Part shown: one piece after another, positions 19,466-38,147 of the stretch
How the letters are laid out: every line of letters starts with the position of its first letter
Numbering within the stretch: position 1 is the first letter of the stretch
Sequence record: OR670491.1
Length of the DNA: 64,000 bases
Direction: 5' to 3' (one strand)
Program-made: the position numbers and the translations under genes
The notes under the pieces: model-generated
Told to the model about the DNA's origin: nothing
What the model saw: the letters and a program-made list of their open reading frames with translations, nothing else
The model's database searches: none

Positions 19466-19579
19466 AAACTATTTTAAAAGTATTTGTAGAAAGTACTTGC
19501 ACAGTACTGATAAAAGCGTATAATGTTTTACATCGAGAGCGGGAACTCTTCCCGCTACACTTTAAGAGAGATTAATACG

Positions 19580-19942
19580 ATGGCGACTCAAATCACTAAA
19601 ATCATTGCTAACCTGGTTAACTTCCGCGACGATATGAAAGATCTTCCGGCGGCAACGGTTAAAACTCACATTGACGCATACCGCGAACTGATTAAAATGC
19701 TGCCGCTTAAGCGTGAACAATACGCCGCCACCGTGATGCTTGATGCGATGATCCATAAGATGATCGCCAGTGATTTAACGATGGCTTATCAGTATATGGG
19801 TGAATTGTTCGCGGTGTATAGTAAACCAGTACCAGGAATGGAAAGTACAGAAGTATTACACGGTTTAAATTTAAAACAAGATGCATGGGATAATATGCCT
19901 CGTTTCCTGGTATGGGCTGACAGTGGCAAAATTTACGAATAA
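19580..19942 (+). CDS. hypothetical protein
   Basis: ATG 19580 behind promoter/stem-loop cassette. Confidence 0.75.
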   Translation: MATQITKIIANLVNFRDDMKDLPAATVKTHIDAYRELIKMLPLKREQYAATVMLDAMIHKMIASDLTMAYQYMGELFAVYSKPVPGMESTEVLHGLNLKQDAWDNMPRFLVWADSGKIYE

Positions 19943-20034
19943 GTTAAAAATTAGTTTGACAGTACTGAATAAAAGCGTATAATGTTTTACATCAGGTGGG
20001 GAATAGTTCCCCACTATATAAGAGGATTAAAAAA

Positions 20035-20274
20035 ATGGCTAAATCAAAAATGTTCTTAGGTCACAAAAATAAAACTCATTGGAATGTAAGCCTTTGGATT
20101 AATAACGATGAGGGATTGTATCGGTTGGCCCAGGACTTTATTAACGATAGCACTAATCGCAATGATGCGGCCCGTCATATGATGTTATTTTTAGAACAGA
20201 CTGGACAAGATAAAACACCGGACGGATTCAAATATAGCACTACTGCGATCCGTGCGGCAATGGTAGGAATGTAA
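20035..20274 (+). CDS. hypothetical protein, paralog of 22076..22315
   Basis: GHKNKTHWNVSLWINN ... TPDGFKYSTTAIRAAMVGM shared. Confidence 0.8.
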   Translation: MAKSKMFLGHKNKTHWNVSLWINNDEGLYRLAQDFINDSTNRNDAARHMMLFLEQTGQDKTPDGFKYSTTAIRAAMVGM

Positions 20275-20360
20275 TAGAATATATTTAAAGTACTATCATT
20301 TTTTTGCGATAGTACTTTATAATAGTGTTTTATTCATACACCAACGATAAGGGCAACAGC

Positions 20361-20627
20361 ATGAATATTAAGTATTTTGCGACGCGTGAACAAGCTCGGA
20401 TCGCCGCTCGCCAGGACGGGGCAACGTTTAAAGATATGGGCGTACAATCGGAACGTGGTAAACGTTGGGCCATTGTAAAGCGTAGTACCGCCAGATCATT
20501 ACAGTACTGGTTAGCGGCCTTAAAAAGTCCCGATAGTGTATCGCGTCGAGTGGTAGAAATAAAGCTCGACCGAAAGGGCAACCGCGTGACCGTGTACCGT
20601 ACTAAAAAGATAGCAGTACTTGAATAA
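20361..20627 (+). CDS. hypothetical protein, paralog of 32821..33225
   Basis: FATREQAR...FKDMG...GKRWA...DRKGNRVTVY shared. Confidence 0.8.
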   Translation: MNIKYFATREQARIAARQDGATFKDMGVQSERGKRWAIVKRSTARSLQYWLAALKSPDSVSRRVVEIKLDRKGNRVTVYRTKKIAVLE

Positions 20628-20714
20628 AAAGTACTTGCAAACTATGTTTAATGGCGTATAATGTTTTACATCGAGAGCGGGAACTCTTCCCGCCTATAAC
20701 CTGGAGTAATAAAA

Positions 20715-20945
20715 ATGACTAATATGTATATGACTGAAGTTAAAACCGTAAAAGATACTACCACGAATAAAACTACTTACTTACAGCGGATCTGCGGTGT
20801 ATGGCAACGTATCAGCAAATCAAAGTACTTTAAATTAACATCATATGCAAATCGTTCGGATTCATTCAGTACTGAAATAAAAGGTAATAAAGTACACCAA
20901 TACGGCACTTATTATTATTACAGCCTGGACGCGATTGCAGTATAA
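20715..20945 (+). CDS. hypothetical protein
   Basis: own promoter cassette, GGAG RBS. Confidence 0.7.
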   Translation: MTNMYMTEVKTVKDTTTNKTTYLQRICGVWQRISKSKYFKLTSYANRSDSFSTEIKGNKVHQYGTYYYYSLDAIAV

Positions 20946-20975
20946 GCAGTTTACAAATCTTTACAATTGCCGGTA

Positions 20976-21056
20976 TTGACTTATTTTGTCAGTACTGGCA
21001 TAATGTATTCATTGGCAGATAAGCCGTAGCCCATAGGGTGCGGGAGTGTATCTATA
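20976..21056 (+). ncRNA. orphan promoter + CCCA-GGGTGC element (candidate short ncRNA or operator)
   Basis: TTGACT-17-CATAAT then TAGCCCATAGGGTGCGGGAGTGTATCTAT; no ORF. Confidence 0.4.
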
Positions 21057-21071
21057 GAAAAATTAGTTTAG

Positions 21072-21148
21072 TATAGTTACAATTGTGCACCCGGTGGGTT
21101 AGCTGTTGTCATGGGGTATATTATGCCAGTACTTGATAATTCTGTCAA
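21072..21148 (-). ncRNA. orphan leftward promoter + CCCA-GGGTGC element
   Basis: minus strand TTGACA-17-CATAAT then CTAACCCACCGGGTGCACAATTGTAACTAT; converges on previous unit. Confidence 0.4.
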
Positions 21149-21230
21149 TACTTTTTTTTTACTATTCAGTACTGAAAACTATTTTTAAAAAGTACTTGCA
21201 AACTATGTTTAAAGGCGTATAATGTTTTAC

Positions 21231-21305
21231 ATCAGGACGGGGAACGAAATAAGTAACTTCCCGTTAAGTAGCCCAGGAGTAAGGCACACGAAAAACTCCC
21301 CTGAT
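21231..21305 (+). ncRNA. candidate structured small RNA / leader, copy 1
   Basis: follows TTGCAA-16-TATAAT; ATCAGG/CCTGAT closing stem, ACGGG/CCCGT stem, GGAGT/ACTCC stem with 14-nt loop. Confidence 0.55.
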
Positions 21306-21373
21306 AAAATAGTTTGACAAATGTTTTTAAAAGCGTATAATACTTACATCAACTACTGAATGAGGGTTACAAA

Positions 21374-21985
21374 ATGAAAACTATCACTACTACTACTTTC
21401 GTTATGGATTTTTCTGAATTGAACGCAGAACAACAAACGTCAGCTATCGAACTGGTTCGGGATCGTGAGCGTTCATGTGAGGATAATTTCTTTGCTGAGG
21501 GCGTTATCGAGTACTATAAAGAAACAGTACTACCAGAATACGGCATAGATGAAGCTGAATTGCAATACAGTGGTTTTTGGTCGCAAGGTGACGGTGCATC
21601 AATCAGTACTGACAGCGTGGACGCAGTGAAGTTTTTACGCAAGATTAAAGCGTTAACGAAATATCGTTCTATCCGTCACTTGTTGAATGAAGATGATTTG
21701 GCAATGAGTGTAGAACGTTCACACTCTCGCTACGCACACGAAAACACGGTAAGCGGGTACATTGAATCGGCTTACACTGATTTAACCGCAAAACAAGAAA
21801 CGTTAGTTAATGAGCTTGAGGAACTACTCACTGATACTATTCGTGAATTGTCCCGCAAGTTGTACCGTGATTTAGAGAATGCATATGAGGATCAATTCAC
21901 TACTGAAAACATTACGGCACTGATTGAGGGTAACGAATATCAATTCAATGTTATTGATGGCGTAGTGGAATCAATCGAATATTAA
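21374..21985 (+). CDS. conserved hypothetical protein (YSGFWSQGDGAS motif)
   Basis: 203 aa acidic ORF, own promoter and GAGG RBS. Confidence 0.8.
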   Translation: MKTITTTTFVMDFSELNAEQQTSAIELVRDRERSCEDNFFAEGVIEYYKETVLPEYGIDEAELQYSGFWSQGDGASISTDSVDAVKFLRKIKALTKYRSIRHLLNEDDLAMSVERSHSRYAHENTVSGYIESAYTDLTAKQETLVNELEELLTDTIRELSRKLYRDLENAYEDQFTTENITALIEGNEYQFNVIDGVVESIEY

Positions 21986-22075
21986 TTTAAAAAGTACTTG
22001 CAAACTAAGTTTAAAAGCGTATAATACTTTATATCGAGGCGGGGAGTGGTTCCCCGCTCAAACGAGGATTTAAAA

Positions 22076-22315
22076 ATGGCTAGTACTAAAACTTACAACG
22101 GACACAAAAACAAAACTCATTGGAATGTAAGCCTTTGGATTAATAACGGTGAGTCATTGTATCGGCTTGCTCAAAGTTGCATCGCACAAAGTAGAACTAA
22201 AGATATTGCTGCGGAATGTATGTACCGCAGATTAAAAGCCAACGGTACTACTACAACGCCGGACGGCTTTAAGTATAGCACTACTGCGATCCGTGCTGCA
22301 ATGGTTGGAATGTAA
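22076..22315 (+). CDS. hypothetical protein, paralog of 20035..20274
   Basis: shared N- and C-terminal blocks. Confidence 0.8.
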   Translation: MASTKTYNGHKNKTHWNVSLWINNGESLYRLAQSCIAQSRTKDIAAECMYRRLKANGTTTTPDGFKYSTTAIRAAMVGM

Positions 22316-22372
22316 TATTCAGTACTGAGATAATGGCGGGTAATAGTTCCCGCCTTTACTGAGGGTTATCTA

Positions 22373-22633
22373 ATGAGTAAAGTAATTAGCTATACAGCAC
22401 TAAGCAAGACATTATCTATTAGCCAGTGCACCGATGGTTATTGGCTATTTGATGAAACGCGTGGCATGAATTTAGCGATGCGTGCAAAAACTGCTGAGGC
22501 GGCGTATATTCAAGCACTGGAATACTACCAGGAACGTTTAAAGGAAGTAGAAGAAGATTATAAAAGCCTCAAAGCGAAAGTAGATCATTTCGTCGGTCAA
22601 TTCAACGAGGAAGACGACGACAAACAATATTGA
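22373..22633 (+). CDS. hypothetical protein
   Basis: stem-loop + GAGG RBS; C-terminal coiled coil. Confidence 0.75.
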   Translation: MSKVISYTALSKTLSISQCTDGYWLFDETRGMNLAMRAKTAEAAYIQALEYYQERLKEVEEDYKSLKAKVDHFVGQFNEEDDDKQY

Positions 22634-22719
22634 AAAAGTACTTGCAATTAGTTTTCAGTACTGTATAATGGTTTACATCAAAGGGAGAAATGGTTCTCCC
22701 TGGTAATGAGGAAAATAAA

Positions 22720-22941
22720 ATGGCTAATATCACTACTCTTTCCCAACTGGAAGCACTGGTGAAATCTATGCGGGAACATGCCGACAAAATCGGCGTACAA
22801 GATCCAGCCGTTTGCTTCTGCGACGAATTGAATGATGATACCCTGGTAATAGCAGAAGTCCAGGACGTTTCTAACTATTCCTCGCGTTACACTGGCGGCG
22901 TAGCAAATAAAGGCGACTTCTGTTTATACCTTACAAAATAA
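22720..22941 (+). CDS. hypothetical protein
   Basis: ATG 22720 behind cassette. Confidence 0.7.
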   Translation: MANITTLSQLEALVKSMREHADKIGVQDPAVCFCDELNDDTLVIAEVQDVSNYSSRYTGGVANKGDFCLYLTK

Positions 22942-22994
22942 CAACGCGGGGAGATAATAACTCCCCGTTACTTTTTCAGTACTGAATCATTTAA

Positions 22995-23076
22995 TAGACG
23001 GATCTCGGCACCCGGTGGGTTAGTGACTGTTTCGTCTTGATGTAGTAATTATGCCAGTACTGGATGCACTTGTCAA
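22995..23076 (-). ncRNA. orphan leftward promoter + CCCA-GGGTGC element
   Basis: minus strand TTGACA-17-CATAAT...CTAACCCACCGGGTGCC. Confidence 0.4.
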
Positions 23077-23184
23077 CAACTATTTTTCAAATACTTTTTA
23101 TTAAAATACTTGCAATTAGTTTTTAAACGCGTATAATGTTTTGCATAGGGGGAGCGGTTCCCCTGGTAACTAAGGAATAATAAA

Positions 23185-23421
23185 ATGCTTGAACAAATCA
23201 AATCAACGTCTGCGAATGTAACGGGAACGGTATCACACTTTACTAGTGATGAATCGCGTGGTGTTCCTTATTGTGCTGTACATGTAAACACTGATGGCAA
23301 CTACTGGTTTACGGTTTACGGATCATATTCATTTGGACGGCCAGGGCATCAAAAAATTCTGGATAAAGTACAACCAACGGGTAAAAATATCACTGCCGAA
23401 ATGTTTTATAAAAAATCATAA
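23185..23421 (+). CDS. hypothetical protein
   Basis: own cassette, AAGGA RBS. Confidence 0.75.
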   Translation: MLEQIKSTSANVTGTVSHFTSDESRGVPYCAVHVNTDGNYWFTVYGSYSFGRPGHQKILDKVQPTGKNITAEMFYKKS

Positions 23422-23505
23422 AGTACTTGCAATTAGTTTTTAGTACTGTATAATATTTTACATCGCAAGGGGAAACGGTTTCCCCTGGTAACTAAGGATA
23501 ATCAA

Positions 23506-23805
23506 ATGAAAGTTGCAATCATCGCCCTGGCTTTATCTGTATCGTCTTTCGCTGTTAACGCTTCCGTTGATGTACCGCGTGAAAAATTCATTCAGTGCAC
23601 TGTTGCAATGACTAACGAGGAAACGGCTGAGATTGTTACCAAATCCCTGGAACTGGCCCCTGCAATGTTTGCTAATGGCCCGTACCATGAAGAAGATGAT
23701 CAGGGTAGCACGACCATCTATTACGATGCAAAAAGTAAACGCGGTTCAGTTACTGTAATGGATACTGAGAAAGTTACATTCACGGGAGTAATTAATTGTT
23801 TTTAA
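23506..23805 (+). CDS. putative exported protein
   Basis: Sec-type signal peptide MKVAIIALALSVSSFAVNA. Confidence 0.75.
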   Translation: MKVAIIALALSVSSFAVNASVDVPREKFIQCTVAMTNEETAEIVTKSLELAPAMFANGPYHEEDDQGSTTIYYDAKSKRGSVTVMDTEKVTFTGVINCF

Positions 23806-23821
23806 TGAAGTACTGAATCAT

Positions 23822-23851
23822 AAGCCCACTATAAGAAGTGGGCTTTTTTTA
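23822..23851 (+). terminator. intrinsic terminator
   Basis: AAGCCCACT-6-AGTGGGCTT + T tract. Confidence 0.85.
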
Positions 23852-23927
23852 TTGTAGTACTGAATACTTTAAAAATAGTTTTGAAATAGTAGTTGACATT
23901 ACCAGGGAAAGGCGTAGAATGTATTAC

Positions 23928-23990
23928 ATCAGGACGGGGAACACTAAGTAGACCGCCAGTAAGTCGAACGAAAAACTGGACACGACCTGG
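23928..23990 (+). ncRNA. candidate structured RNA / leader, copy 3 (divergent)
   Basis: ATCAGGACGGGGAAC start; CCAGT/ACTGG stem with the same 14-nt AAG-N4-ACGAAAA loop. Confidence 0.5.
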
Positions 23991-24035
23991 AAACTTTGAT
24001 AAACTAACTTACACTTTAATTGAGGAATTAAAAAA

Positions 24036-24515
24036 ATGGCAAATGTAAAATCATTCTTTAAAGCACTGGTATCTTCTGACGTATCTATCGCCGCTGAATT
24101 GCTGGCTGACCTGGATAATGATACCATGAAAGCAGTACGCAATAATTTTAATATGGCGTACAGTGCAGCAAAAGAACTGCAAGCCAAAAAGGTAGCAGAA
24201 CTGGAAGCGGCAAAGGCAGAACGTGAAGCAGAACTGCAAGCAACAATCGAAAGCATCCAGGCGGCGGTAAGTGGATTGGATATCGAGATCGTAACCGATA
24301 TGGCACATAAAGCCCTAGCTGCAAAATACGGTGAAGTAAAAGCGGTTAAAGAAAAGAAATGGATTCAGGACCGCGTTAACGTAGTACTTGACAACGGGGA
24401 AGAATATCTTATTCCTGTACGCGGTAACTGCATTGCCGTAGTACTGGACGCGATTAACTCCAGTGGTATGACACGCGAGGAATGGATCGAAGCTCATCGC
24501 AAAGTTGAAGCATAA
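24036..24515 (+). CDS. H-NS-like protein with degenerate DNA-binding motif
   Basis: central coiled coil; C-term NGEEYLIPVRGNCIAVVLDAINSSGMTREEWI aligns without gaps to the H-NS DNA-binding domain as I recall it. Confidence 0.55.
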   Translation: MANVKSFFKALVSSDVSIAAELLADLDNDTMKAVRNNFNMAYSAAKELQAKKVAELEAAKAEREAELQATIESIQAAVSGLDIEIVTDMAHKALAAKYGEVKAVKEKKWIQDRVNVVLDNGEEYLIPVRGNCIAVVLDAINSSGMTREEWIEAHRKVEA

Positions 24516-24536
24516 CAATAAAAGTACTGAATCACT

Positions 24537-24563
24537 AGCCCACCTTAAACGGTGGGCTTTTTT
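24537..24563 (+). terminator. intrinsic terminator
   Basis: AGCCCACC-6-GGTGGGCT + T tract. Confidence 0.85.
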
Positions 24564-24790
24564 GTGTTTATCGTTTACCAGGCCACCAGCACCGCCTAGA
24601 AACGATTCTAACGCATTAAACTGATTATCTGATGCATTGCCCTAGCTGGTGGCGTTAAGGCTGTAAGAACGCGATTGAGAGCGTTTAAAGTATTTTGCAA
24701 AAAGTAATAAAAAGTACTTGCACGATTAAGAGATTAGCGTATAATTAATTACATCAAGGCAAGACACCTTAACTAACTGAGGATATAAAG

Positions 24791-24943
24791 ATGAATACTT
24801 ATGACCTGGATTGTTTTACTTTACAAGTAATGTCAGTATGCAGTAAGAAAGATTGGTCATCAAAGGAATTTAAAGCAGTTATCGCGTGTGCAAAACACGG
24901 CAAGACTATCAATGAAACGGCATCAATCATTGATAAACTTTAA
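24791..24943 (+). CDS. hypothetical protein (50 aa)
   Basis: own promoter, GAGG RBS; C-term resembles 28686..28829. Confidence 0.55.
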   Translation: MNTYDLDCFTLQVMSVCSKKDWSSKEFKAVIACAKHGKTINETASIIDKL

Positions 24944-25012
24944 AAAATAGTTTGACAATAGTTTTAAGTACTGGCATAATACATACATCAACTACTGAAT
25001 AGGAATTAAAAA

Positions 25013-25240
25013 ATGGCTATTATCATTACTCGCGTATCTGGTACTACTGGCAACGAACAAGTAGTTGCAGTCATTACCAACAAGGAAGGTGCGGAATTGC
25101 AAAATGCAATGAATACCTGGGCCGTTAATGAGTTCGGTCAGTGGGCAAGTGTAGCATACATTGAAACCTATCAAGTGCCGTCGATTAGTTTAACTGATTT
25201 GGGCGTTGAGCGTATCCTTTGCCTGGATGAATTAAATTAA
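25013..25240 (+). CDS. hypothetical protein
   Basis: own promoter and RBS. Confidence 0.75.
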   Translation: MAIIITRVSGTTGNEQVVAVITNKEGAELQNAMNTWAVNEFGQWASVAYIETYQVPSISLTDLGVERILCLDELN

Positions 25241-25325
25241 AAAAGTACTTGCAAAGTAAATCGAATAAAGTATAATACATTACATCAAGGGGAGAAATGG
25301 TTCTCCCCACTACAAGGAAACTAAA

Positions 25326-25469
25326 ATGAAAACTTGTCAATGTGGTCATAAATCTATTACGGGTTTTAAGCGGGGCGTTGCTCTTTGCCAGTACCATTAT
25401 AATTTACAAGTATGGGGTAAAGAATGGGCCGACCAGGTGGAAGCAGCAAAGAAAGCAAAAAGTAAGTAA
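25326..25469 (+). CDS. small Cys/His-rich protein (47 aa)
   Basis: MKTCQCG...LCQYH; behind cassette. Confidence 0.6.
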   Translation: MKTCQCGHKSITGFKRGVALCQYHYNLQVWGKEWADQVEAAKKAKSK

Positions 25470-25557
25470 AATATTATCACAGTACTATTGACATAGTTTG
25501 ATAGTACTGGCATAATAGATTTTATCAAGACAACATATTAATTTAAGGAATACAAAA

Positions 25558-25881
25558 ATGGCTAAAACTATCATTAACACCGTTTCCCTGGCTGCAATCC
25601 GTGCAATCAATGTTGACGGTAAACGTTGGACTGATACATATGGCAATACTTATCATTCTTGTCATGTAAGCGTTGAACTGGATAACGGTTTGAATGATCT
25701 GGCGGTTGAATCATTTACTTATGGCTATGAAGATGCATATCAACAAACGGCGTTAGATCTATTAAAGGAATCAGTAGACGGGCTTAATACTGATGAAACC
25801 TCCCTTACTCGTTTGTGCAATGATCTTAATATCCCGTTGCATTGTACTGTACAGAATGTTAAACGCAAAAAAGATCTTTAA
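25558..25881 (+). CDS. hypothetical protein, paralog of 32407..32730
   Basis: RWTDxxGNTYHSC...TYGY...VKRKKD shared. Confidence 0.8.
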   Translation: MAKTIINTVSLAAIRAINVDGKRWTDTYGNTYHSCHVSVELDNGLNDLAVESFTYGYEDAYQQTALDLLKESVDGLNTDETSLTRLCNDLNIPLHCTVQNVKRKKDL

Positions 25882-25961
25882 TTAGCTTTACTTTATGCAG
25901 ATACTTTGATATAGTGTCTGCATAGGGGAAAGAAATTAAATTAACTTAAGAGGATCGTATA

Positions 25962-31459: not shown

Positions 31460-31470
31460 AAATAATTGAA

Positions 31471-31631: not shown

Positions 31632-31704
31632 ATCAGGACGGGGAACGAAATAAGTAACCCCGTTAAGTAGTCCAGGAGTAAGACATACGAAAAACTCCCC
31701 TGAT
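31632..31704 (+). ncRNA. candidate structured small RNA / leader, copy 2
   Basis: closely similar to 21231-21305 with all three stems retained. Confidence 0.55.
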
Positions 31705-31773
31705 AAAATAGTTTGACAATAGAAAGTAAACGAGTATAATACTTACATCAACCACTGATAAGGAAACATAAAA

Positions 31774-32049: not shown

Positions 32050-32135
32050 GTATTGACAAAGTATCTTAGTACTGTATAATAGTTTACATCAAGGGGGGGA
32101 ATGGTTCCCCTCCTAACTAAAAGAGAGAAATAAAA

Positions 32136-32318
32136 ATGGCTAAGTGCACTATCTGTAATAAAGAAATAGTATTAGTTCCAAGTGCCCGTGAACGTGCCGC
32201 TCGGTTCGGTGGCAAAGCGTCAGACTATACAAAAATGTTTACTACCCATACAGCTTGCCAGGTAGCAAAACGTTCACAAGAAAGCGTAGAATTAATGCGT
32301 AAACTTTCCAAAAAATAA
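32136..32318 (+). CDS. small putative metal-binding protein
   Basis: CxxC ... HxxC. Confidence 0.7.
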   Translation: MAKCTICNKEIVLVPSARERAARFGGKASDYTKMFTTHTACQVAKRSQESVELMRKLSKK

Positions 32319-32406
32319 GTATTGACAAAGTATCTTAGTACTGTATAATAGTTTACATCAAGGGGGGGGGAATGGTTCCCCTCCTAACAAAGAGAGAGAA
32401 ATAAAA

Positions 32407-32730
32407 ATGGCTATGATCCTTACCCAGAAAGTAGAACTGAAAATTGTAACCTCCTTTGACATTAAAGTTAATCGGTGGACTGATAGCCACGGCAATACTT
32501 ACCACTCCTGCTACGTGTCCGCATTGATTGGTGATCGCTGGGAAGACCTGGGACACGAAACCTTTACATACGGTTACGGCACACAAGGCGAGTACACGGG
32601 TTTAGAAATCATTAAGGAAACTGTAATAGGTTTCAACCCGAAAGAGAAAGTACTACACAGAATTGAGAAAGAGATCAACAAAGAAATTACAGTTCGCTAC
32701 TACGATGTAAAACGTAAGAAAGACATGTAA
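32407..32730 (+). CDS. hypothetical protein, paralog of 25558..25881
   Basis: shared motifs; upstream cassette almost identical to that of 32136. Confidence 0.8.
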   Translation: MAMILTQKVELKIVTSFDIKVNRWTDSHGNTYHSCYVSALIGDRWEDLGHETFTYGYGTQGEYTGLEIIKETVIGFNPKEKVLHRIEKEINKEITVRYYDVKRKKDM

Positions 32731-32820
32731 TAGAATCCATTTAAAGTACTATTTGACATTGCCCAGATAGTACTTTATAATAGACTCTAACTTGTAGTAC
32801 TAATTAACTTAACTAATAGG

Positions 32821-33225
32821 ATGTACACCATGATTACTAAATTCTTCGCTACCCGTGAACAAGCTCGCATCGTTGCCCGTGAGGAAGGTGAAACATTTAA
32901 AGACATGGGTAAAGATTCTCCTACTGGTAAACGCTGGGCGGTACAGTTCAAAGAGATCTCTGATATTGTGAATTCACCTGAGCCTGTACTTACAGCAGCA
33001 GAACTAAAGCAAGCTCAAGAACTGGCTGAAGTACTGAACGCTCAAGATGACTTCTTGAAAGGTTCTGATATTGAAGTTACAGTTAACGCAAATGCATGGA
33101 CTCACGCGGATCACCTGGCAAACCTTAAGCGTCCAAGTGAACTGATTCGTAACCAGAAAGAGATCCGTCATGACCGTAAAGGAAACCGTGTTACCGTATA
33201 CAGTAAACGCCGCCAGGTTATCTAA
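32821..33225 (+). CDS. hypothetical protein, paralog of 20361..20627
   Basis: shared motifs with a longer central insert. Confidence 0.8.
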   Translation: MYTMITKFFATREQARIVAREEGETFKDMGKDSPTGKRWAVQFKEISDIVNSPEPVLTAAELKQAQELAEVLNAQDDFLKGSDIEVTVNANAWTHADHLANLKRPSELIRNQKEIRHDRKGNRVTVYSKRRQVI

Positions 33226-33289
33226 TACCTTGCAGTACTAACCAACACGGCGGGAAGACAGTTCCCGCCTTTTTTATAGGACAAACAAA

Positions 33290-33544
33290 ATGATTAAGGT
33301 TCAACTATATAAAGATAACATCTTACGGGTACACTATAAAGCACCTCAGAGAATCATCACAAAGGCCGTACAGCTTGCTAATGAGTTTATTAATGGTAAC
33401 CTATTACCTAGGAAGTTAAGCAACGGGAAACTGCGTGTAATCGACGTGGACACTAACAACAGGATAGTAATCGAGAACACAGGAAAGATAAACCTTTATG
33501 AGCATCAACAATACAATAAGAAAATAAAACTAATATCACGTTGA
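33290..33544 (+). CDS. hypothetical protein, possibly ParE/RelE-like fold
   Basis: RKL...VIDV...RIV...EHQQYN pattern; weak. Confidence 0.55.
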   Translation: MIKVQLYKDNILRVHYKAPQRIITKAVQLANEFINGNLLPRKLSNGKLRVIDVDTNNRIVIENTGKINLYEHQQYNKKIKLISR

Positions 33545-33597
33545 CAGTACTCAATTGTTTTAGTACTATGTACACATACCAACACGGGAGAAACAAA

Positions 33598-33816
33598 ATG
33601 AAATTATCTAAAATCGAAAAGAAAACTATTGATGAAGCAGTTAAGCACGGTTATACCTTTCGTAATGATTCACATTTTACCAATTTTCAACAAGGGTATC
33701 GTACTATTAAAAAACTAATTGACAAAGGTTTATTAGTTGAAGTCAATAACGGTAACGGTATCGAGTATCAACCAACACAGGACGCATTTTATTTTAAGAA
33801 ATATAATATTATCTAA
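33598..33816 (+). CDS. hypothetical protein, possible winged helix
   Basis: TIKKLIDKGLLVEV; own promoter. Confidence 0.6.
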   Translation: MKLSKIEKKTIDEAVKHGYTFRNDSHFTNFQQGYRTIKKLIDKGLLVEVNNGNGIEYQPTQDAFYFKKYNII

Positions 33817-33874
33817 TTGACAGTACTCAAATGTTTTAGTACTATATGTACATACCAACACGGGGGGAAACAAA

Positions 33875-34117
33875 ATGATTACTTTAGAAAAACGTATCAA
33901 AGAAACTACATCGCTGGTGGAACTGTTAACAGTACTCAAATGTAAAACAGCACCATTCAGCACGCCGGACTTTATTAATATGGTTGATGTTAATGGTCGC
34001 TATCGTATCACGGTCGAACAAGGAGCGGCGAAAGTATTCAGTACTAAAAACACGAAGGAAGTGATCCACGCCGTTAATGTTAAAAAAGTAGTTGCCATTG
34101 ATAGTAAAGTACTGTAA
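33875..34117 (+). CDS. hypothetical protein
   Basis: promoter cassette duplicated from 33541. Confidence 0.7.
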   Translation: MITLEKRIKETTSLVELLTVLKCKTAPFSTPDFINMVDVNGRYRITVEQGAAKVFSTKNTKEVIHAVNVKKVVAIDSKVL

Positions 34118-34148
34118 TATAGTTTCATTAACTCAAGGAGATCATGCA

Positions 34149-34733
34149 ATGCGTAATTATACAAAATTCATCCGTACACTGTCAGAAATGGAAACCAACA
34201 AAGAGATCCTTTCAGCTTGTCGGTTAGCTGACCTGGAGATCATCGGTGCTGGTTCTTCCCGTATAGTTTTCGCTTTAAATGATCGGTTAGTGATTAAGGT
34301 CGCGAATTGTGATGCGGGTGTAGAACAAAATGAAACTGAATGTAAGGTATGGAATTTTTTAGACTATGACCGCCCTCAGTTGAAACAGTACTTTGCAAAG
34401 GTGCATATGCATTTATGCGATCCTGATAATATGTTTATCGTTATGGATCGGTTGAGTACTGCAAGCAAAGGCAGTGTGAAGCACGTAAACGCGTGCAATG
34501 AATTAAAGTACAATATTAAACGTAATGCAATCGAACGCCAGCACCGCTTTGCTGATGCACTACAACACGTTGATGATACATTATCAACACTAACGATAAG
34601 AGATATCAGAAAACAGAATATCGGCCAGGATCGTAATGGACTTATTAAAGTACTTGATTACGGTTTAACCAGCAATATCTGGAATCAGTACTATAAAAAG
34701 CGTGATGTGGCAGCAAGTAAGGTAACACGATAA
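34149..34733 (+). CDS. protein kinase-like (Ser/Thr kinase fold) protein
   Basis: Gly loop IGAGSSRIV, VIK lysine, QNETE helix C, catalytic RDIRKQNIG, LDYG; AAGGAG RBS before ATG 34149. Confidence 0.85.
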   Translation: MRNYTKFIRTLSEMETNKEILSACRLADLEIIGAGSSRIVFALNDRLVIKVANCDAGVEQNETECKVWNFLDYDRPQLKQYFAKVHMHLCDPDNMFIVMDRLSTASKGSVKHVNACNELKYNIKRNAIERQHRFADALQHVDDTLSTLTIRDIRKQNIGQDRNGLIKVLDYGLTSNIWNQYYKKRDVAASKVTR

Positions 34734-34745
34734 AAAAGATTAAAA

Positions 34746-34834
34746 AAAGGGATTGACTCCGGTCAGTCCCTTTGCTATTATATATCCATTGAGAGATAAC
34801 TCACTGACCCATAGGGTGCGGAAGTGTATCTATT
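34746..34834 (+). ncRNA. hairpin-embedded orphan promoter + CCCA-GGGTGC element
   Basis: TTGACT-17-TATTAT; CTGACCCATAGGGTGCGGAAGTGTATCTAT. Confidence 0.4.
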
Positions 34835-34955
34835 ATATAAGTATTCAGTACTGAAAACTATTTTTAAAAAAGTACTTGCATTGTACTTAGAATCAAGTAT
34901 AATGTTTTATATCGAGAGGGGGAAATGGTTCTCCCTGGCAATAAGGAATAAAATC

Positions 34956-35177
34956 ATGACTACAATGACTTGCATTTACGCTTCCAATCGTCTGAATGAT
35001 GCGGCCTTTAATGTTGATTCAGAATATCAATGTTATCGGGATGAAAATAAAAAAGTTTTTGTAGTTGATAATAATGGTTTCCATATTGAATTACAATCCG
35101 GCTTCACTGGTGTTGATGGTAAATCAGTATGGGGCGTACAGGATGATAAAGGCACATATCATTTTAAACGTAATTAA
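34956..35177 (+). CDS. hypothetical protein
   Basis: ATG 34956 behind cassette. Confidence 0.7.
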   Translation: MTTMTCIYASNRLNDAAFNVDSEYQCYRDENKKVFVVDNNGFHIELQSGFTGVDGKSVWGVQDDKGTYHFKRN

Positions 35178-35260
35178 GTATTGACAAAGTATATCAGTAC
35201 TGTATAATAGTTTACATCAAGGGGAGAATAGTTCTCCCCGATACTAAAAGGAATAAAATC

Positions 35261-35665
35261 ATGACTACTACTAATCTTGCTCGGAATATCGCCAACGATA
35301 AAAATCATGCTGCAATGGTTGTTGGTTACATTGAAGCTATGCAATTCAGTACTGTACACAATGAGAACGGCGATTACCTGGAAGATTATGAATTATCAGA
35401 GCAAGCCCATCAAGCGGCAGTGATTGCATGTTCTCGCTTCATTGAGAAACACGGTAATGATCTGGAAGTAGTTCGCGGTATGTTTATTGATTACGGTTAT
35501 GAGCAAGCTGGTCATGATCTGTTCCTTACCCGCGAAGGTCACGGAACTGGTTTTTGGGATCGTGGTTTAGGTCACTATGGCGATGTATTCACGAAGTACT
35601 GCGAAGAAATCAACGTTTGCGATCCCTATGTAGGCGATGATAATCTAATCTATATGGGCGAATAA
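35261..35665 (+). CDS. conserved hypothetical phage protein (GHDxxLTRxGHGxGFWDR)
   Basis: own cassette; His/Gly-rich motif. Confidence 0.8.
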   Translation: MTTTNLARNIANDKNHAAMVVGYIEAMQFSTVHNENGDYLEDYELSEQAHQAAVIACSRFIEKHGNDLEVVRGMFIDYGYEQAGHDLFLTREGHGTGFWDRGLGHYGDVFTKYCEEINVCDPYVGDDNLIYMGE

Positions 35666-35752
35666 AAGTATTTGACAAAGTATATCAGTACTGTATAATA
35701 GTTTACATCAAGGGGAGAATAGTTCTCCCCGATACTAAAAGGAAACAAAATT

Positions 35753-36025
35753 ATGTCCAGCTACTCCGCTACTATGATCATTAAAGATATGAACGGTAAT
35801 CCTACTTCTGCTGGTGGATCATTTGGAAACATTAATTTAGATGGTCGGTTATCCATGCAATCAGCAATCGATGCAGCGAAAGAAGTTTTTAAGAATGAAT
35901 GTACTGTTAGTAAGCTGGATTATATGGGATTTGCTATCGAAAAAACTAATCGTTTTGTGGACTACAAAAAACCACTGATGATTGATACTAACCTGAAAGC
36001 AAACGAAGTGGAGTACTTATTATGA
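35753..36025 (+). CDS. hypothetical protein
   Basis: cassette almost identical to that of 35261. Confidence 0.75.
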   Translation: MSSYSATMIIKDMNGNPTSAGGSFGNINLDGRLSMQSAIDAAKEVFKNECTVSKLDYMGFAIEKTNRFVDYKKPLMIDTNLKANEVEYLL

Positions 36026-36213
36026 CAGTTGAAGAAGTTAAAAAAGTACTGGCAGTACTACGCTATCATAATCATTGTAAGGTGAAGAATGATCCTGATT
36101 ATCTTGATTCATCCCTGGAAGAGGATACACTACAAGCAATAAGCCATATGCAAACATTAGCAAAGCGTATGACCGAAAAGAATAGACCGGACTATATCGG
36201 AAATAAAATTTAA
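36022..36213 (+). CDS. hypothetical protein
   Basis: overlapping start, GGAG RBS. Confidence 0.6.
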   Translation: MTVEEVKKVLAVLRYHNHCKVKNDPDYLDSSLEEDTLQAISHMQTLAKRMTEKNRPDYIGNKI

Positions 36214-36299
36214 AAAGTACTTGCATTGTAGTTAGATTAACGTATAATGTTTTACATAGAGCGGGGGAATAGTTCTCCCGCCAGTCCAGGAGATACACC

Positions 36300-36563
36300 A
36301 TGAACACTATCGAAATCACTATCAATGCACACGTATACGACAACGTAATCATGCAAACTACTATGACCGCTAATGATACCAGTACTTTGCGGAATACTGT
36401 TATTAGTGCTGTATGTGCCGCTATCGGTGATGTCGCCCTGGAAAATGCAAAACACGTAAACGATGGTTTCACTATGTGCAAACGTGATAACGCAAAACAT
36501 ATCATCGTGGAAGGTTACGGCGGTGTAGAATTTAATGTTTATATGAAAAAAGTACTTGCATAA
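36300..36563 (+). CDS. hypothetical protein
   Basis: own cassette. Confidence 0.75.
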   Translation: MNTIEITINAHVYDNVIMQTTMTANDTSTLRNTVISAVCAAIGDVALENAKHVNDGFTMCKRDNAKHIIVEGYGGVEFNVYMKKVLA

Positions 36564-36630
36564 TAACTAAAACAAAGTATAATGTTTTGCATAGGGGGAG
36601 ATATCCTCCCCCACTAAAAGGAGTAATAAA

Positions 36631-36855
36631 ATGGCTAACTTTGATGAACTGATGCGGGAAGTAGCTAACCTGGCAGAAGAGAAGAAATCATTCGATTCTA
36701 TCTATAACACCGCTCACCGTGATTCAGTACTGGCATGTAACCAGGATCAAAAAGATGAACTAATCGCCACCTATCATGAAGCATGGAAGTACTACCGACA
36801 ATGGGAGAAAGAAGAAAGTGAGTCTACCATTGACGGCCTCAATAATCTAATCTAA
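36631..36855 (+). CDS. acidic helical hypothetical protein
   Basis: own cassette. Confidence 0.75.
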   Translation: MANFDELMREVANLAEEKKSFDSIYNTAHRDSVLACNQDQKDELIATYHEAWKYYRQWEKEESESTIDGLNNLI

Positions 36856-36931
36856 AAGTTTTATTTCAGTACTATTGACATAGCTTGATAGTACTGATGT
36901 AATAACTTTACTAACTACAAGGGGAAACATA

Positions 36932-37189
36932 ATGGATCAGTTCACACAATATCGGGTAAATCATCAAGCTATGGCCTACGTAGAAGACCATAAAACGTTA
37001 CCAGTACTGCAACCAGTTAAAGGCCATATCTATCGTGCAATGTCGTGGTGTACGGCCCAGGATGGCTATAAAACCGTAGCCGTTGGTATGTATTGCGGTA
37101 ATGGTGAATGGTTTGATCCAAATAATCCGGTAGCCATTGACAGTACTGAAAAAATGAAATGGGCCGACTACATCGAAGATATTTCATAA
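36932..37189 (+). CDS. hypothetical protein
   Basis: own promoter. Confidence 0.7.
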   Translation: MDQFTQYRVNHQAMAYVEDHKTLPVLQPVKGHIYRAMSWCTAQDGYKTVAVGMYCGNGEWFDPNNPVAIDSTEKMKWADYIEDIS

Positions 37190-37278
37190 AAACTATTTGA
37201 CAGTACTAACCAGTAATGTATAATGTTTTACATAGAGCGGGGAATAGTTCTCCCGCCAATAGTTTGGAGTAAAACATT

Positions 37279-37479
37279 ATGTCTATCGCTATCGCCCTGG
37301 TTGAAGTACTGAAAGAAGCTAAAGCCAACCAGATCGACGTAAAGATCCAGGAACTACAAAACGGCTTAATCGGCTGTACTTGTACCGCTGGTGGAGCGGC
37401 AGACTATCGAGAACACGAATCACTCGAATCACTGGTTCGGTATCTTACCATGATCGTTGATGATTGGAGAATCATCTAA
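37279..37479 (+). CDS. hypothetical protein
   Basis: own cassette. Confidence 0.7.
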   Translation: MSIAIALVEVLKEAKANQIDVKIQELQNGLIGCTCTAGGAADYREHESLESLVRYLTMIVDDWRII

Positions 37480-37495
37480 CAAAAAAAGAATAAAA

Positions 37496-37576
37496 AAAGG
37501 GATTGACTCCGGTCAGTCCCTTTGCTATTATATACGCATAGACAAAAACTAGCCCACAGGGTGCATAGGTGTATCC
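37496..37576 (+). ncRNA. hairpin-embedded orphan promoter + CCCA-GGGTGC element
   Basis: TTGACT-17-TATTAT; CTAGCCCACAGGGTGCATAGGTGTATCC. Confidence 0.4.
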
Positions 37577-37725
37577 AAAATATATAGTTAATAACGGTGA
37601 GTAACTATCTGCTGGTGGAACTAAAACTATTAATAAAAAAGTATTGACAAAGTATATCAGTACTGCAATAATGTATCTCGTAGGGCGGCAATGGTGCGAC
37701 GGCCCACAAAGTTAGGAGATTCAAA

Positions 37726-38058
37726 ATGACTACTTCAATCGCTATCGTTAAAGCTTTCATCCGTACTAATGTTTCCTCTGTATTCATCGACGGCCTCGAC
37801 CGTAACGTAGAATACTCAATCATTATCGCACAAACGGCAAACGGTTCTCGGTACATCCTGAATGATAGTGAAGCAAATCACTACTACTTCACTAAAGCCA
37901 CTGGCTTTAAACGCATCGATGCTGATGTAGTATACGCTAAGATGAATAAGCTGGTAGACAAGATTAACGCTAAAGGTACTATAGATTTACAGTACTGGAC
38001 CGAAACCGATCCAGAATATGGATCTCACCGCTACCTGAATCCAGGTATCAAAATGTAA
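37726..38058 (+). CDS. hypothetical protein
   Basis: own promoter, AGGAG RBS. Confidence 0.75.
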   Translation: MTTSIAIVKAFIRTNVSSVFIDGLDRNVEYSIIIAQTANGSRYILNDSEANHYYFTKATGFKRIDADVVYAKMNKLVDKINAKGTIDLQYWTETDPEYGSHRYLNPGIKM

Positions 38059-38147
38059 AAAGTACTTGCATAGTACTTAGATTCATGTATAATGTTTTAC
38101 ATAGAGAGGGGGAAATGGTTCTCCCTCCTAAATTAAGGAGTATTGTC

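Follow-up and report, generated by a model that had tools for sequence, protein, structure and literature searches.

Described counterparts of the locus analysed here are the PeSLs, in which the stem-loop is placed at the transcription start or ahead of it and has been assigned a terminator role. In the PeSL-rich region of RB49, the stem-loop either separates the -35 and -10 boxes or overlaps them, and a PeSL stem-loop inserted in front of lacZ, downstream of a promoter, reduced expression to the same extent as the rrnB T1 terminator (PMC2839356). Arbiol et al. also located one mini-circle crossover in the loop of such a stem-loop and suggested the involvement of a DNA-binding recombination protein (PMC2839356).

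The terminal-repeat gene array and its cassettes

The window, a stretch of 64 kb, is the final part of the genome of Escherichia phage vB_EcoM_JNE01 (Asteriusvirus; JNE01), a 355-kb E. coli jumbo phage, and contains an array of ~54 small genes, all on a single strand, in the ~21-kb terminal-repeat region; its match to JNE01 is 100%:

17757..38962 (+): ~21-kb direct terminal repeat (DTR) homolog, enclosing the entire cassette array (alignment to Asteriusvirus phages)

The DTR of vB_Ec-M-J (1-21525) aligns with window positions 17757 to about 38962, the array occupies the DTR counterpart of vB_Ec-M-J, fEgEco12 and Sharanji, and the fEgEco12 and CRJP21 records terminate ~150 bp past the homolog of 38618-38827. 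The fEgEco12 DTR was demonstrated with PhageTerm and restriction digests. In the whole 121Q genome, the five exact matches to the strict cassette pattern are all inside the DTR homolog (5/5). Since it corresponds to the DTR, the array looks like an early host-takeover module, by analogy with those of SPO1 and T5. The preliminary description had not recognised it as the terminal-repeat region. The label "anti-host genes", given to these genes in the preliminary description, is mostly inference, since no known function was found for most of the array ORFs; one of the exceptions is a GNAT acetyltransferase (ORF 29783-30139).

We were able to identify 24-25 hairpin cassettes between positions 19497 and 38147, as the preliminary description had claimed, with the following composition: an UP-like A tract, TTGACA/TTGCAA, 16 bp, TATAAT, GTTTTACATC, a GC hairpin of 7-11 bp, a Shine-Dalgarno site and ATG. 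Some also mark differences from other phages:

19497..19579 (+): hairpin cassette TTGCAC-16-TATAAT, hairpin 19538-19556, ORF 19580-19942
19956..20034 (+): hairpin cassette TTGACA-16-TATAAT, hairpin 19995-20015, ORF 20035-20274; additional ORF in vB_Ec-M-J and A4 (junction overlap 61 bp)
20635..20714 (+): hairpin cassette, hairpin 20677-20693, ORF 20715-20945
21998..22075 (+): hairpin cassette, hairpin 22038-22058, ORF 22076-22315; borders replacements/indels of G17, 121Q, A4, EJP2 and fEgEco12
22305..22372 (+): atypical cassette TTGGAA-18-GATAAT, GGCGGG..CCCGCC hairpin adjoining the -10, ORF 22373-22633
22642..22716 (+): hairpin cassette, hairpin 22682-22701; annotated ATG 22690 within the loop, likely start 22717
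23110..23184 (+): hairpin cassette, hairpin 23146-23165, ORF 23185-23421; left partner in a cassette-to-cassette junction of 121Q
23427..23505 (+): hairpin cassette, hairpin 23468-23486, ORF 23506-23805
25249..25325 (+): hairpin cassette, hairpin 25289-25308, ORF 25326-25469; orthologous cassette-ORF pair in Vequintavirinae W70
26761..26839 (+): hairpin cassette, hairpin 26801-26820, ORF 26840-26986, missing from 121Q and CRJP21 (overlap 72-74 bp)
26990..27067 (+): hairpin cassette, hairpin 27030-27049, ORF 27068-27220
27593..27671 (+): hairpin cassette, hairpin 27634-27652, ORF 27672-28013
28029..28110 (+): hairpin cassette, hairpin 28069-28088, ORF 28111-28323; right edge of a 2.8-kb EJP2 deletion
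30143..30217 (+): hairpin cassette TTGCAT-17-TATAGT, hairpin 30182-30200, ORF 30218-30406; borders the G17 deletion of the GNAT gene
30764..30840 (+): hairpin cassette, hairpin 30804-30823 (one A·C mismatch), ORF 30841-31053
31061..31139 (+): hairpin cassette, hairpin 31097-31122, ORF 31140-31313
32053..32135 (+): hairpin cassette, hairpin 32092-32114, ORF 32136-32318, missing from 121Q (overlap 103 bp)
32322..32406 (+): hairpin cassette, hairpin 32363-32385, ORF 32407-32730
34876..34955 (+): hairpin cassette, hairpin 34917-34936, ORF 34956-35177
35181..35260 (+): hairpin cassette, hairpin 35221-35239, ORF 35261-35665, missing from 121Q and CRJP21 (overlap 99 bp)
35672..35752 (+): hairpin cassette, hairpin 35712-35730, ORF 35753-36025
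36221..36299 (+): hairpin cassette, hairpin 36261-36281, ORF 36300-36563, missing from 121Q (crossover immediately past the -35)
36556..36630 (+): hairpin cassette, hairpin 36594-36612, ORF 36631-36855
37197..37278 (+): hairpin cassette, hairpin 37237-37256, ORF 37279-37479
38066..38141 (+): final hairpin cassette, hairpin 38106-38127; annotated ATG 38115 within the loop, likely start 38142

The core motif TATAATGTTTTACATC (up to 2 mismatches) has 24 copies in the window, where shuffles gave an expectation of 0.18; every copy is on the + strand and in the range 18147-38103. Three near-identical pairs noticed earlier were recovered, with identities of 87/92 (cassettes 32053/32322), 81/85 (cassettes 35181/35672) and 55/61 (promoters 33541/33817). 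A scan gave ~45 sigma70-type promoters on the + strand of the region, most of them with a spacer of 16 bp, and 13 perfect TTGACA-N16/17-TATAAT promoters on that strand in 19400-38900. An own promoter is located at most 125 nt from 37 of the 54 annotated genes, and in 25 of these 37 it belongs to a hairpin cassette. Start sites, timing and strength of the promoters are inferred from the consensus. The ~20 further sigma70-type promoters have no GC hairpin; they include the following:

21314..21373 (+): consensus promoter without GC hairpin, ORF 21374-21985
24718..24790 (+): promoter without hairpin, ORF 24791-24943, missing from vB_Ec-M-J and CRJP21
24952..25012 (+): extended -10 promoter (TGGCATAAT) without hairpin, ORF 25013-25240
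25488..25557 (+): promoter without hairpin, ORF 25558-25881; junction with 124-bp overlap in vB_Ec-M-J, 121Q and A4
28352..28415 (+): promoter without hairpin, ORF 28416-28595
28614..28685 (+): promoter without hairpin, ORF 28686-28829
29726..29782 (+): promoter without hairpin, GNAT acetyltransferase ORF; left edge of the G17 deletion
31713..31773 (+): promoter without hairpin, ORF 31774-32049; additional module in 121Q (overlap 55 bp)
32753..32820 (+): promoter with 17-bp spacer, without hairpin, ORF 32821/32830-33225
33541..33597 (+): promoter TTGACA-17-TACTAT
33817..33874 (+): promoter TTGACA-17-TACTAT, ORF 33875-34117
37644..37725 (+): promoter with Phapecoctavirus-like leader (GGGCGGCAATGGTGC...), ORF 37726-38058; additional module in 121Q (overlap 68 bp)

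The hairpin is dispensable for some genes at least, because 12 promoters do without it and because the ORF 25013-25240 family, which has a hairpin-less promoter in JNE01, is led by a hairpin cassette in W70.

The hairpin as a transcribed structure

The stem begins 8-14 nt (mode 12) past the -10 hexamer and closes a loop of 3-5 nt, which places the hairpin ~5 nt into a ~44-nt leader counted from the predicted start, with an A-rich tail between it and the Shine-Dalgarno site. Predicted energies range from -13 to -17 kcal/mol (z -2.3 to -3.7 relative to dinucleotide shuffles), with no pairing of the Shine-Dalgarno region in the folding prediction.

Comparison with seven relatives gave identities of 0.98 for the -10, 0.94 for both UP element and -35, 0.93 for the initial transcribed region, 0.91-0.94 for the stems and 0.87 for the loop, with third codon positions at 0.85, which shows, at the sequence level, that the cassettes form a family of repeats on which purifying selection acts. 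The inner stems are diverse (13 distinct ones in JNE01, 72-78 over 11 genomes) at a constant offset, and a 345,809-bp contig has very different stem sequences at the identical hairpin position. Compensatory changes were observed in six of seven stem pairs, with a covariation score of 0.527 versus 0.182 in shuffles, for hairpins chosen by a hairpin finder, so that the percentage paired follows from that choice. Interior non-Watson-Crick stem positions are G·T in 24 cases versus A·C in 5 on the sense strand (p = 5e-4). The compensatory changes and the G·U bias show conservation of the hairpin as a sense-strand structure, which hence acts as RNA.

The same bias is not expected if the inverted repeat functions in double-stranded DNA, as a cruciform or protein-binding palindrome stimulating recombination, a speculative role of the GGGG...CCCC motifs in PeSLs. 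The mini-circle crossover of Arbiol et al. (PMC2839356) would fit such a role, which we consider very improbable here: resolved crossovers fall in the -35, spacer or -10/start region and none is at the hairpin, and junctions also occur at the hairpin-less promoters 25488, 31713, 37644 and 29726.

The hairpins could instead terminate or attenuate transcription, the function proposed for PeSLs, by stopping or damping read-through from upstream cassettes, with each gene then depending mainly on its own promoter. The lacZ result with RB49 (PMC2839356) agrees with this, the stems here also consist of a G-run and a C-run, and most array genes lack another terminator. Nevertheless, the hairpins are downstream of their own predicted start and would halt their own transcripts, a T run follows none of the 24 (0/24), the tails being A-rich, and separate T-run terminators with different stems, together with four composites over a -35, are present every few genes of the same array:

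22946..22977 (+): intrinsic-terminator-like hairpin and T run, 3' of ORF 22690-22941
23822..23854 (+): intrinsic-terminator-like hairpin (AAGCCCAC..GTGGGCTT) and T run
24537..24567 (+): intrinsic-terminator-like hairpin and T run, 3' of ORF 24036-24515
33249..33278 (+): intrinsic-terminator-like hairpin (GGCGGGAA..TTCCCGCC) and TTTTTT, 3' of ORF 32830-33225
27453..27488 (+): composite terminator/promoter, 12-bp hairpin over the -35 (TTGACT), then TATTAT
31471..31506 (+): composite terminator/promoter AAAGGGATTGAC-TCCG-GTCAGTCCCTTT, then TATTAT
34746..34781 (+): composite terminator/promoter of the same type
37496..37531 (+): composite terminator/promoter of the same type

A terminator function of the cassette hairpin therefore seems unlikely.

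The mRNA-stabilising role put forward in the preliminary description is weakened as well, because the predicted start leaves ~5 unpaired 5' nucleotides ahead of the hairpin and RppH and RNase E require only 2-3 (PMC8833179), and because RNase E bypasses simple stem-loops (PMC9943677); a classical 5'-terminal protector is thus an unlikely description of the modelled leader. The single raw-read RNA run contained no phage reads; the other RNA sets consist of contigs.

Hairpin and AUCAA...ACUAA flanks might also form a 5' tag for a phage or host RNA-binding factor, providing coordinated post-transcriptional control of early messages, such as their shut-off at the early-to-middle switch or their protection against phage-induced RNA decay. 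This is consistent with a leader design common to ~25 mRNAs, with the conservation of the flanks (0.93 in the initial transcribed region), which are present in the 345,809-bp contig too, and with selection on the structure at the RNA level. We regard it as doubtful, since the diversity of stems, both within one genome and in comparison with that contig, would leave only their shape to be recognised, the array genes yielded no identified RNA-binding protein, and the start-site context is common to the hairpin-less promoters.

Gene turnover at the cassettes

Gene content and order between cassettes differ among isolates, as the preliminary description had anticipated: comparison with seven Asteriusvirus genomes revealed numerous indels and replacements of genes and, in EJP2 and 121Q, some reordering. 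At least 13 junctions consist of a single cassette in place of the two present in the other genome, with overlaps of 17-124 bp, and three-way alignments revealed chimeric cassettes with the crossover within the core.

The cassettes may nevertheless be passive, alike as strong promoters of common descent, with turnover due to ordinary illegitimate recombination or to exchange via homologous flanking genes, filtered by selection to intergenic positions. About 5-6 of roughly 30 indels affect promoter-less ORFs or are inside ORFs and so did not arise through cassettes (among them 30407-30755, 23798-23850, 29133-29451 and 26413-26538). Junction location alone is weak evidence, because whole-gene indels must be intergenic and cassettes make up about 60% of the intergenic DNA in the array, so that coincidence is expected. 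The argument for cassette recombination rests on the in-register junctions, each leaving a single chimeric cassette, which speak against passive cassettes. So do the cassette pairs around polymorphic single genes, which are 0.81-0.94 identical (top similarity decile; all-pair median 0.72) and flank unrelated ORFs.

Other phage lineages share parts of the array. Ten or eleven of the 54 gene families, some along with their cassettes, recur in Vequintavirinae and Phapecoctavirus; in W70 and phiWec188 their order differs from that of the array. Homology blocks between genera begin within cassettes and finish at ORF ends, again unlike the pattern expected of passive cassettes, and in the W70 locus all eight AGTACT sites (8/8) are in the 23% homologous to Asteriusvirus. 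One gene family occurs in 224 phage records, a T7-like Kayfunavirus among them. In Kayfunavirus CLB_P1 one shared family follows a different promoter, and in FV3 a terminator, which suits passive cassettes. Overall, we consider passivity improbable. These alignments show that the same genes, in W70 with the same cassettes, are present in unrelated coliphage lineages in another order, and that genomes differ at the cassettes, the sites of gene gain, loss and reordering in related as well as unrelated phages.

Proposed role and comparison with known systems

We consider it fairly probable that the array is an early DTR module with portable promoter/hairpin leaders, in which genes are turned over by cassette recombination. 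Host RNA polymerase would fire the array promoters immediately on DNA entry. As the comparison shows, homologous recombination between in-register cassettes deletes, inserts or swaps the intervening gene and leaves a chimeric cassette, probably via the phage's general recombination system and without need of a dedicated site-specific enzyme; relatives encode a RecA-like recombinase. The hairpin would most likely be a context insulator and decay barrier of the portable leader, keeping the ribosome-binding site open regardless of the upstream sequence and capping the 3' end of read-through RNA from upstream. Its dispensability for some genes speaks against this role.

The earlier wording "integron-like" is appropriate as an analogy only, since each gene has its own promoter and neither an integrase nor an attC-type site was found. 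The likeness to PeSLs extends to the role, cassette-linked gene shuffling, and not to the anatomy: unlike in RB49, the JNE01 stem-loop is transcribed, in the 5' UTR and without a U tract, and is not part of the promoter. The PeSL layout is matched by the composite at 27453..27488, with its hairpin overlapping the -35. The array represents a known sort of phage genome plasticity, now in a new phage group and with the hairpin in another position.

Promoter-hairpin cassettes in the terminal repeat homolog

The region 19497-38147 lies within the part of the window (15020-51000) to which vB_EcoM_JNE01 (OR670491; 355,583 bp; Asteriusvirus) is 100% identical, the window corresponding to the final 64 kb of that record. 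The direct terminal repeat (DTR) annotated in vB_Ec-M-J comprises the first 21,525 bp of that genome, whose positions 1 and 21525 align with window 17757 and ~38962, respectively, and the records of fEgEco12 and CRJP21 end ~150 bp past the homolog of ORF 38618-38827. The fEgEco12 repeat, backed by PhageTerm and restriction digests, measures 20,993 bp and that of Sharanji 20,668 bp. The alignment to the relatives' repeats thus places 19497-38147 in a single assembled copy of a ~21-kb terminal repeat. The sign of the GC skew flips at ~18 kb and, right of ~39 kb, ORFs are tightly packed and cassette-type promoters are absent. For CBB, a related phage, prediction has placed RpoD-like promoters carrying UP-like elements both in early regions and in its terminal repeat.

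Two neighbouring features were also observed. The segment adjoining the repeat homolog, 39061-51000, has a quite different gene organisation, being a long run of ~65-85 aa ORFs whose stop and start codons overlap or abut and in which consensus promoters are absent. In the left part of the repeat homolog, adjoining the first cassette upstream, there is a 66-bp tandem repeat (19301-19465; two and a half copies, two of them 100% identical), each copy of which carries AGTACT pairs and whose copy number varies in G17, 121Q, A4 and EJP2.

The cassette array outlined in the preliminary description is real. The motif TATAATGTTTTACATC (up to two mismatches) is present in 24 copies, against 0.18 expected, all on the + strand and only within 18147-38103 of the window. 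We identified ~45 sigma70-type promoters on the + strand, including 13 perfect TTGACA-N16/17-TATAAT promoters and ~30 near-consensus ones, with a spacer of mostly 16 bp and a AAAAAGTAC-type tract upstream. A hairpin is present in 24-25 of them, with a GC stem of 7-11 bp and a loop of 3-5 nt, starting 8-14 nt past the -10 (mode 12) and followed by an A-rich tail, a Shine-Dalgarno site and the ATG. Among the annotated genes, 37 of 54 have their own promoter within 125 nt, in 25 cases as a hairpin cassette. The three near-identical cassette pairs named in the preliminary description are identical at 87 of 92, 81 of 85 and 55 of 61 positions and, when the strict cassette pattern was searched in the whole 121Q genome, all five exact matches fell inside the repeat homolog.

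The transcription start was predicted at the A located 8 nt after the -10, based on the Y-R rule and on ATCGAGAG, with which two cassettes begin and which equals the start of the T7 A1 transcript. The predicted leader has ~44 nt, and its predicted unpaired 5' tail preceding the stem has a median of 5 nt (range 1-7). In the only raw-read RNA run phage reads were absent; the other runs are contigs, probably partly DNA, whose joints fall at cassettes and were left uncounted, having short sides and possibly involving paralogous cassettes. The array promoters match the sigma70 consensus; their expression and the functions of the hairpin are inferred.

Some hairpin loops (GGAGAAATGG) contain an ATG in frame with the downstream ORF, which was taken as start by the JNE01 annotation (22690 and 38115) or, at 27038, by the ORF lister. 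Translation probably starts instead at 22717, 38142 and 27068, respectively, each behind a Shine-Dalgarno site. A CATAAT-ACAYCCATCAAGACGAGA start region is common to the early promoters of RB49, an unrelated phage, and to some promoters here (29137 and, on the - strand, 23076). No Rfam match was obtained for the whole window at gathering thresholds, nor a notable one for the array region at E <= 1; no tRNA genes were found in the window and no description of these cassettes was found in the Asteriusvirus literature searched.

The PHROG matches of the array products are mostly of unknown function, and the Pfam matches, apart from DUFs, are the following:
29462-29719, DksA/TraR zinc finger
29783-30139, GNAT acetyltransferase
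34149-34733, kinase match, weak and sub-threshold
one ORF, ParE-like domain
PADLOC gave marginal matches only. The Pfam matches are hints of interference with host processes, and an anti-host role of the array genes is plausible.

Gene exchange within and beyond Asteriusvirus

The preliminary description proposed that the cassettes allow small genes to be gained, lost and reordered. In alignments with the genomes of seven Asteriusvirus isolates (vB_Ec-M-J, G17, 121Q, fEgEco12, CRJP21, A4 and EJP2), gene content and order between cassettes are not invariant: by gene number in the array, EJP2 has the order g48-g47-g41-g49-g45-g29 and a moved g37, and g10 has moved in 121Q. Around 30 indel or replacement events were read off the alignments, 22-24 of which have one or both edges in cassettes, and at least 13 junctions have an overlap of 17-124 bp, corresponding to one cassette where the other genome has two. 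In three-way alignments at five ORFs (23185-23421, 26840-26986, 32136-32318, 35261-35665 and 36300-36563), the single 121Q cassette is chimeric: its upstream part matches the left copy and its downstream part the right one, with the crossover in the -35, the spacer or the -10/start region. Identity between the two cassettes on either side of these polymorphic genes is 0.81-0.94 (0.73 in one case), whereas the median over all 300 cassette pairs is 0.72. Tandem gene duplication was considered as the source of the near-identical pairs and rejected, since the ORFs that they flank are unrelated to each other (32136/32407 and 35261/35753). Five to six events are not bounded by cassettes (30407-30755, 23798-23850, 29133-29451, 22621-22629 and, within an ORF, 26413-26538). 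The alignments support a role of the cassettes in recombination, and the junctions look like those of general homologous recombination; excision products were not observed.

Sharing of these genes extends to other phages. Ten to eleven of the 54 gene families are also present, in a different order, in Vequintavirinae W70 and in Phapecoctavirus phiWec188, with 57-93% amino-acid identity. W70 has cassettes of the same type (e.g. TTGCAA-16-TATAAT ACATTACATCAAGGGGAGAAATGATTCTCCCC), and its homology blocks start inside cassettes and stop at ORF ends; in the family of ORF 25013-25240, the leader carries the hairpin in W70 and lacks it in JNE01. The 23185-23421 family was found in 224 phage records, including a T7-like Kayfunavirus, CLB_P1, whose homolog (452-772; 69% identity) is at the left end of the genome; it has its own, different sigma70-type promoter upstream and is directly followed by gp0.3, an antirestriction gene. 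A scan of IMG/VR added only 121Q itself, a contig as large as Klebsiella phage RaK2 (the RaK2-size contig; 345,809 bp) and one chance match. All eight AGTACT sites of the W70 locus fall within the 23% of it that is homologous to Asteriusvirus, which suggests transfer from an AGTACT-rich jumbo lineage.

The AGTACT palindrome occurs 307 times in the window, against 21.5 expected (14-fold), and AGTACT, CAGTAC and GTACTG are the top hexamers. Coding DNA is enriched for it in every frame (84/58/50), and of the 151 Ser-Thr dipeptides 84 are encoded by it (~15% expected); its density is 11-12 per kb in the non-coding DNA of 1-38.9 kb, and third codon positions are more conserved within it (0.925 vs 0.855). 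In the cassettes it lies next to the -35 (AAAAAGTACTTGCAA) and again, about two helical turns away, next to the extended -10 (CAGTACTGTATAAT). Its frequency per kb is 6.5 in the RaK2-size contig, 0.8 in W70 and 0.2 in phiWec188, and no literature on AGTACT enrichment in Asteriusvirus was found. The SlmA-binding consensus requires a flanking G, and a SlmA-binding site was rejected as explanation since G is the rarest base at that position. Terminator-like hairpins of - strand genes (2086-2110, 3366-3385, 4618-4643, 6034-6059 and 11037-11055) consist of GCCAGTACT-loop-AGTACTGGC and have a T run behind them; the AGTACT motif thus forms terminator stems as well. Many GC-rich 6-bp palindromes, including AGCGCT, AGGCCT, CCATGG, CGTACG and CCCGGG, have no occurrence in the window, against 2-7 expected, which is consistent with restriction-site avoidance.

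These observations can be joined in one tentative reading, which we regard as possible and rather less than probable. The cassettes would be the linkers of an early-gene exchange network spanning unrelated virulent coliphages, namely RaK2-like jumbo phages, Vequintavirinae, Phapecoctavirus and relatives and, in part, T7-like phages. A gene with its cassette would work wherever it lands, the leader hairpin insulating translation from the context; the AGTACT-rich signature would mark jumbo phages as donors of modules now present in rV5-like phages, and AGTACT would be the putative site of a phage factor acting on these promoters.

The leader hairpin and candidate RNA elements

Folding predicts an unpaired Shine-Dalgarno region and, for the stem-loops, an energy of -13 to -17 kcal/mol (z -2.3 to -3.7). 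There are 13 distinct inner stems in JNE01 and 72-78 across 11 genomes, all at the same offset, where the RaK2-size contig has unrelated stems (GGGGATACA/TGTATCCCT and GGGAATGAA/TTCATTCCC). Pair counts were restricted to the 30 distinct hairpins with a 3-nt loop, because in full cassettes MAFFT put 3-nt and 4-nt loops out of register. Two-sided changes were observed in six of the seven stem pairs, and the covariation score was 0.527, against 0.182 in shuffled sets and 0.10-0.14 with partners slid, in a set chosen by the hairpin finder, from which its paired share follows. Under a symmetric rule, the interior non-Watson-Crick positions comprise 24 G·T vs 5 A·C (p = 5e-4), an excess that points to folding of the sense strand, i.e. 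of RNA. Identity to the seven relatives is 0.98 in the -10 and 0.91-0.94 in the stems, and lower in loops (0.87) and third codon positions (0.85). Altogether, this comparison indicates that selection acts on the hairpin structure and not merely on its sequence.

As to its role, a terminator was rejected as the main one by sequence, since a T run is lacking behind the hairpin in all 24 cassettes and separate terminator-like hairpins of canonical form, which do have T runs and whose stems differ, are present in the array (22946, 23822, 24537 and 33249). In addition, four composite elements (27453, 31471, 34746 and 37496) have a 12-bp hairpin over the -35. The preliminary description regarded the hairpins as built-in mRNA stabilisers; a 5'-terminal protector role is, however, doubtful, because two unpaired 5' nucleotides suffice for RppH and RNase E, three or more being preferred (PMC8833179), and a simple stem-loop is readily bypassed by RNase E (PMC9943677). 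We favour a hairpin that would insulate the ribosome-binding site from upstream RNA and would block 3' exonucleases on read-through RNA. The main alternative is that it constitutes an operator for an RNA-binding factor. As a leader element on which selection acts at the RNA level, the transcribed hairpin lends itself to testing.

Around ten promoter-driven non-coding elements with one shared layout were also noticed, at the following positions:
20976-21075, + strand, non-coding element
27460-27560, + strand, non-coding element
29137-29240, + strand, non-coding element
31478-31580, + strand, non-coding element
34753-34855, + strand, non-coding element
37503-37605, + strand, non-coding element
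18925, - strand, promoter of a non-coding element
19141, - strand, promoter of a non-coding element
21148, - strand, promoter of a non-coding element
23076, - strand, promoter of a non-coding element
In this layout, a -10 and a short leader precede a small covarying hairpin whose loop is GA-rich, and the invariant TAGCCCAYMGGGTGC and then RTGTATCTAT come next; no ORF follows, and the next promoter is 120-220 nt further on. The same element is present in the RaK2-size contig (L011:6456) and has no Rfam match. These elements are a candidate small-RNA family.

A second unit, of ~85 nt (ATCAGGACGGGGAAC...CTCCCCTGAT), is located between two promoters:
21231-21320, ~85-nt unit
31632-31719, ~85-nt unit
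23928-24020, diverged copy of the ~85-nt unit
It is also found in the W70 locus (L009:2515-2604), where it is 83-88% conserved, has a closing stem AUCAGG/CCUGAU with an inner hairpin, and may possibly be a small structured RNA.

Comparison with known systems

Terminal repeats with strong early promoters are already known, as are repeats acting as recombination linkers. Here, cassette-mediated shuffling, so far described only in T4-type phages, is extended to RaK2-like jumbo phages and their ~21-kb terminal repeat, and the same small early genes and leaders move between phage families with no other common DNA. Such shuffling and gene movement account for the terminal repeat being more variable than any other part of these genomes and make it the place to seek host-takeover and anti-defence genes; the compact, naturally insulated, strong expression cassettes could be tried as parts.

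The array resembles an integron, as the preliminary description suggested, in being a one-directional array of small genes in which a repeated hairpin-capable element bounds each unit and units are gained, lost and reordered. Integron cassettes, however, are promoter-less, moved by IntI at attC/attI and expressed from one Pc promoter, whereas every unit here has its own promoter and the repeats are promoters, not attC sites. No integrase-type Pfam match was found among 53 ORFs, and the analogy does not extend to integrase and attC features. Morons of lambdoid phages are likewise autonomous promoter-gene(-terminator) units inserted between existing genes, but they are isolated insertions without a shared repeated linker, while the units here form a dense array with homologous linkers. 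Like the present leaders, those of ompA (5' UTR) and of T7 late mRNAs have a stable GC hairpin close to the 5' end and, downstream of it, an open ribosome-binding site; protection by a 5' stem-loop, nevertheless, needs fewer than 2-3 unpaired 5' nucleotides (PMC8833179), against the ~5 (range 1-7) predicted here.

The location agrees with that of the host-takeover modules of SPO1/T5-type phages, since the array aligns with the DTRs of vB_Ec-M-J and fEgEco12. SPO1 is likewise large and virulent, and its terminal repeat also holds a block of small early genes, a few dozen in number, that have strong promoters and ribosome-binding sites (PMC6873191). Host and phage lineage are different, and SPO1 genes are grouped in operons, whereas here there is mostly one promoter per gene. 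No description of repeat-mediated shuffling in SPO1 was found in the literature searched.

The preliminary description likened the cassettes to the promoter-early stem-loop (PeSL) cassettes of T4-type phages. Those of RB49/phi1, PST/T4 and nt-1/KVP40 are defined by a sigma70 promoter, an AT-rich upstream tract and a GGGG...CCCC stem-loop and, further, by location in hyperplastic regions, cassette-bounded indels and mini-circles (Arbiol 2010, PMC2839356; Comeau 2014, PMC4122927). In both systems, sigma70 promoters close to the consensus and preceded by an AT-rich tract lie between small ORFans in a plastic region (here 54 genes of 38-203 aa, with content varying among seven relatives), together with a GC-rich stem-loop of G-run/C-run type, a Shine-Dalgarno site and an ATG, and indels or replacements bounded by cassettes leave a chimeric cassette. 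The position of the stem-loop differs. In PeSLs, where it is assigned a terminator or attenuator role, it is in or before the promoter, be it between or over the two boxes, upstream of the -35 or just ahead of the start site; at the RB49 locus (108-128 kb) we found stem-loops at -24..-5 or -16..+6 relative to the -10 end, either in the spacer separating the two boxes or over the -10, and thus outside the cassette's own transcript. In the main class here it starts +8 to +14 past the -10, is transcribed and lacks a U tract, and only the four composite elements, with a stem-loop over the -35, have the PeSL placement. Moreover, PeSLs are in dispersed hyperplastic regions and the present cassettes in the terminal repeat of a jumbo phage, with sharing across families. 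The feature is therefore real and well defined, and of known kinds, early promoter recombination linkers and a terminal-repeat host-takeover module, in a new lineage; what is new is this lineage and the distinct, transcribed hairpin.
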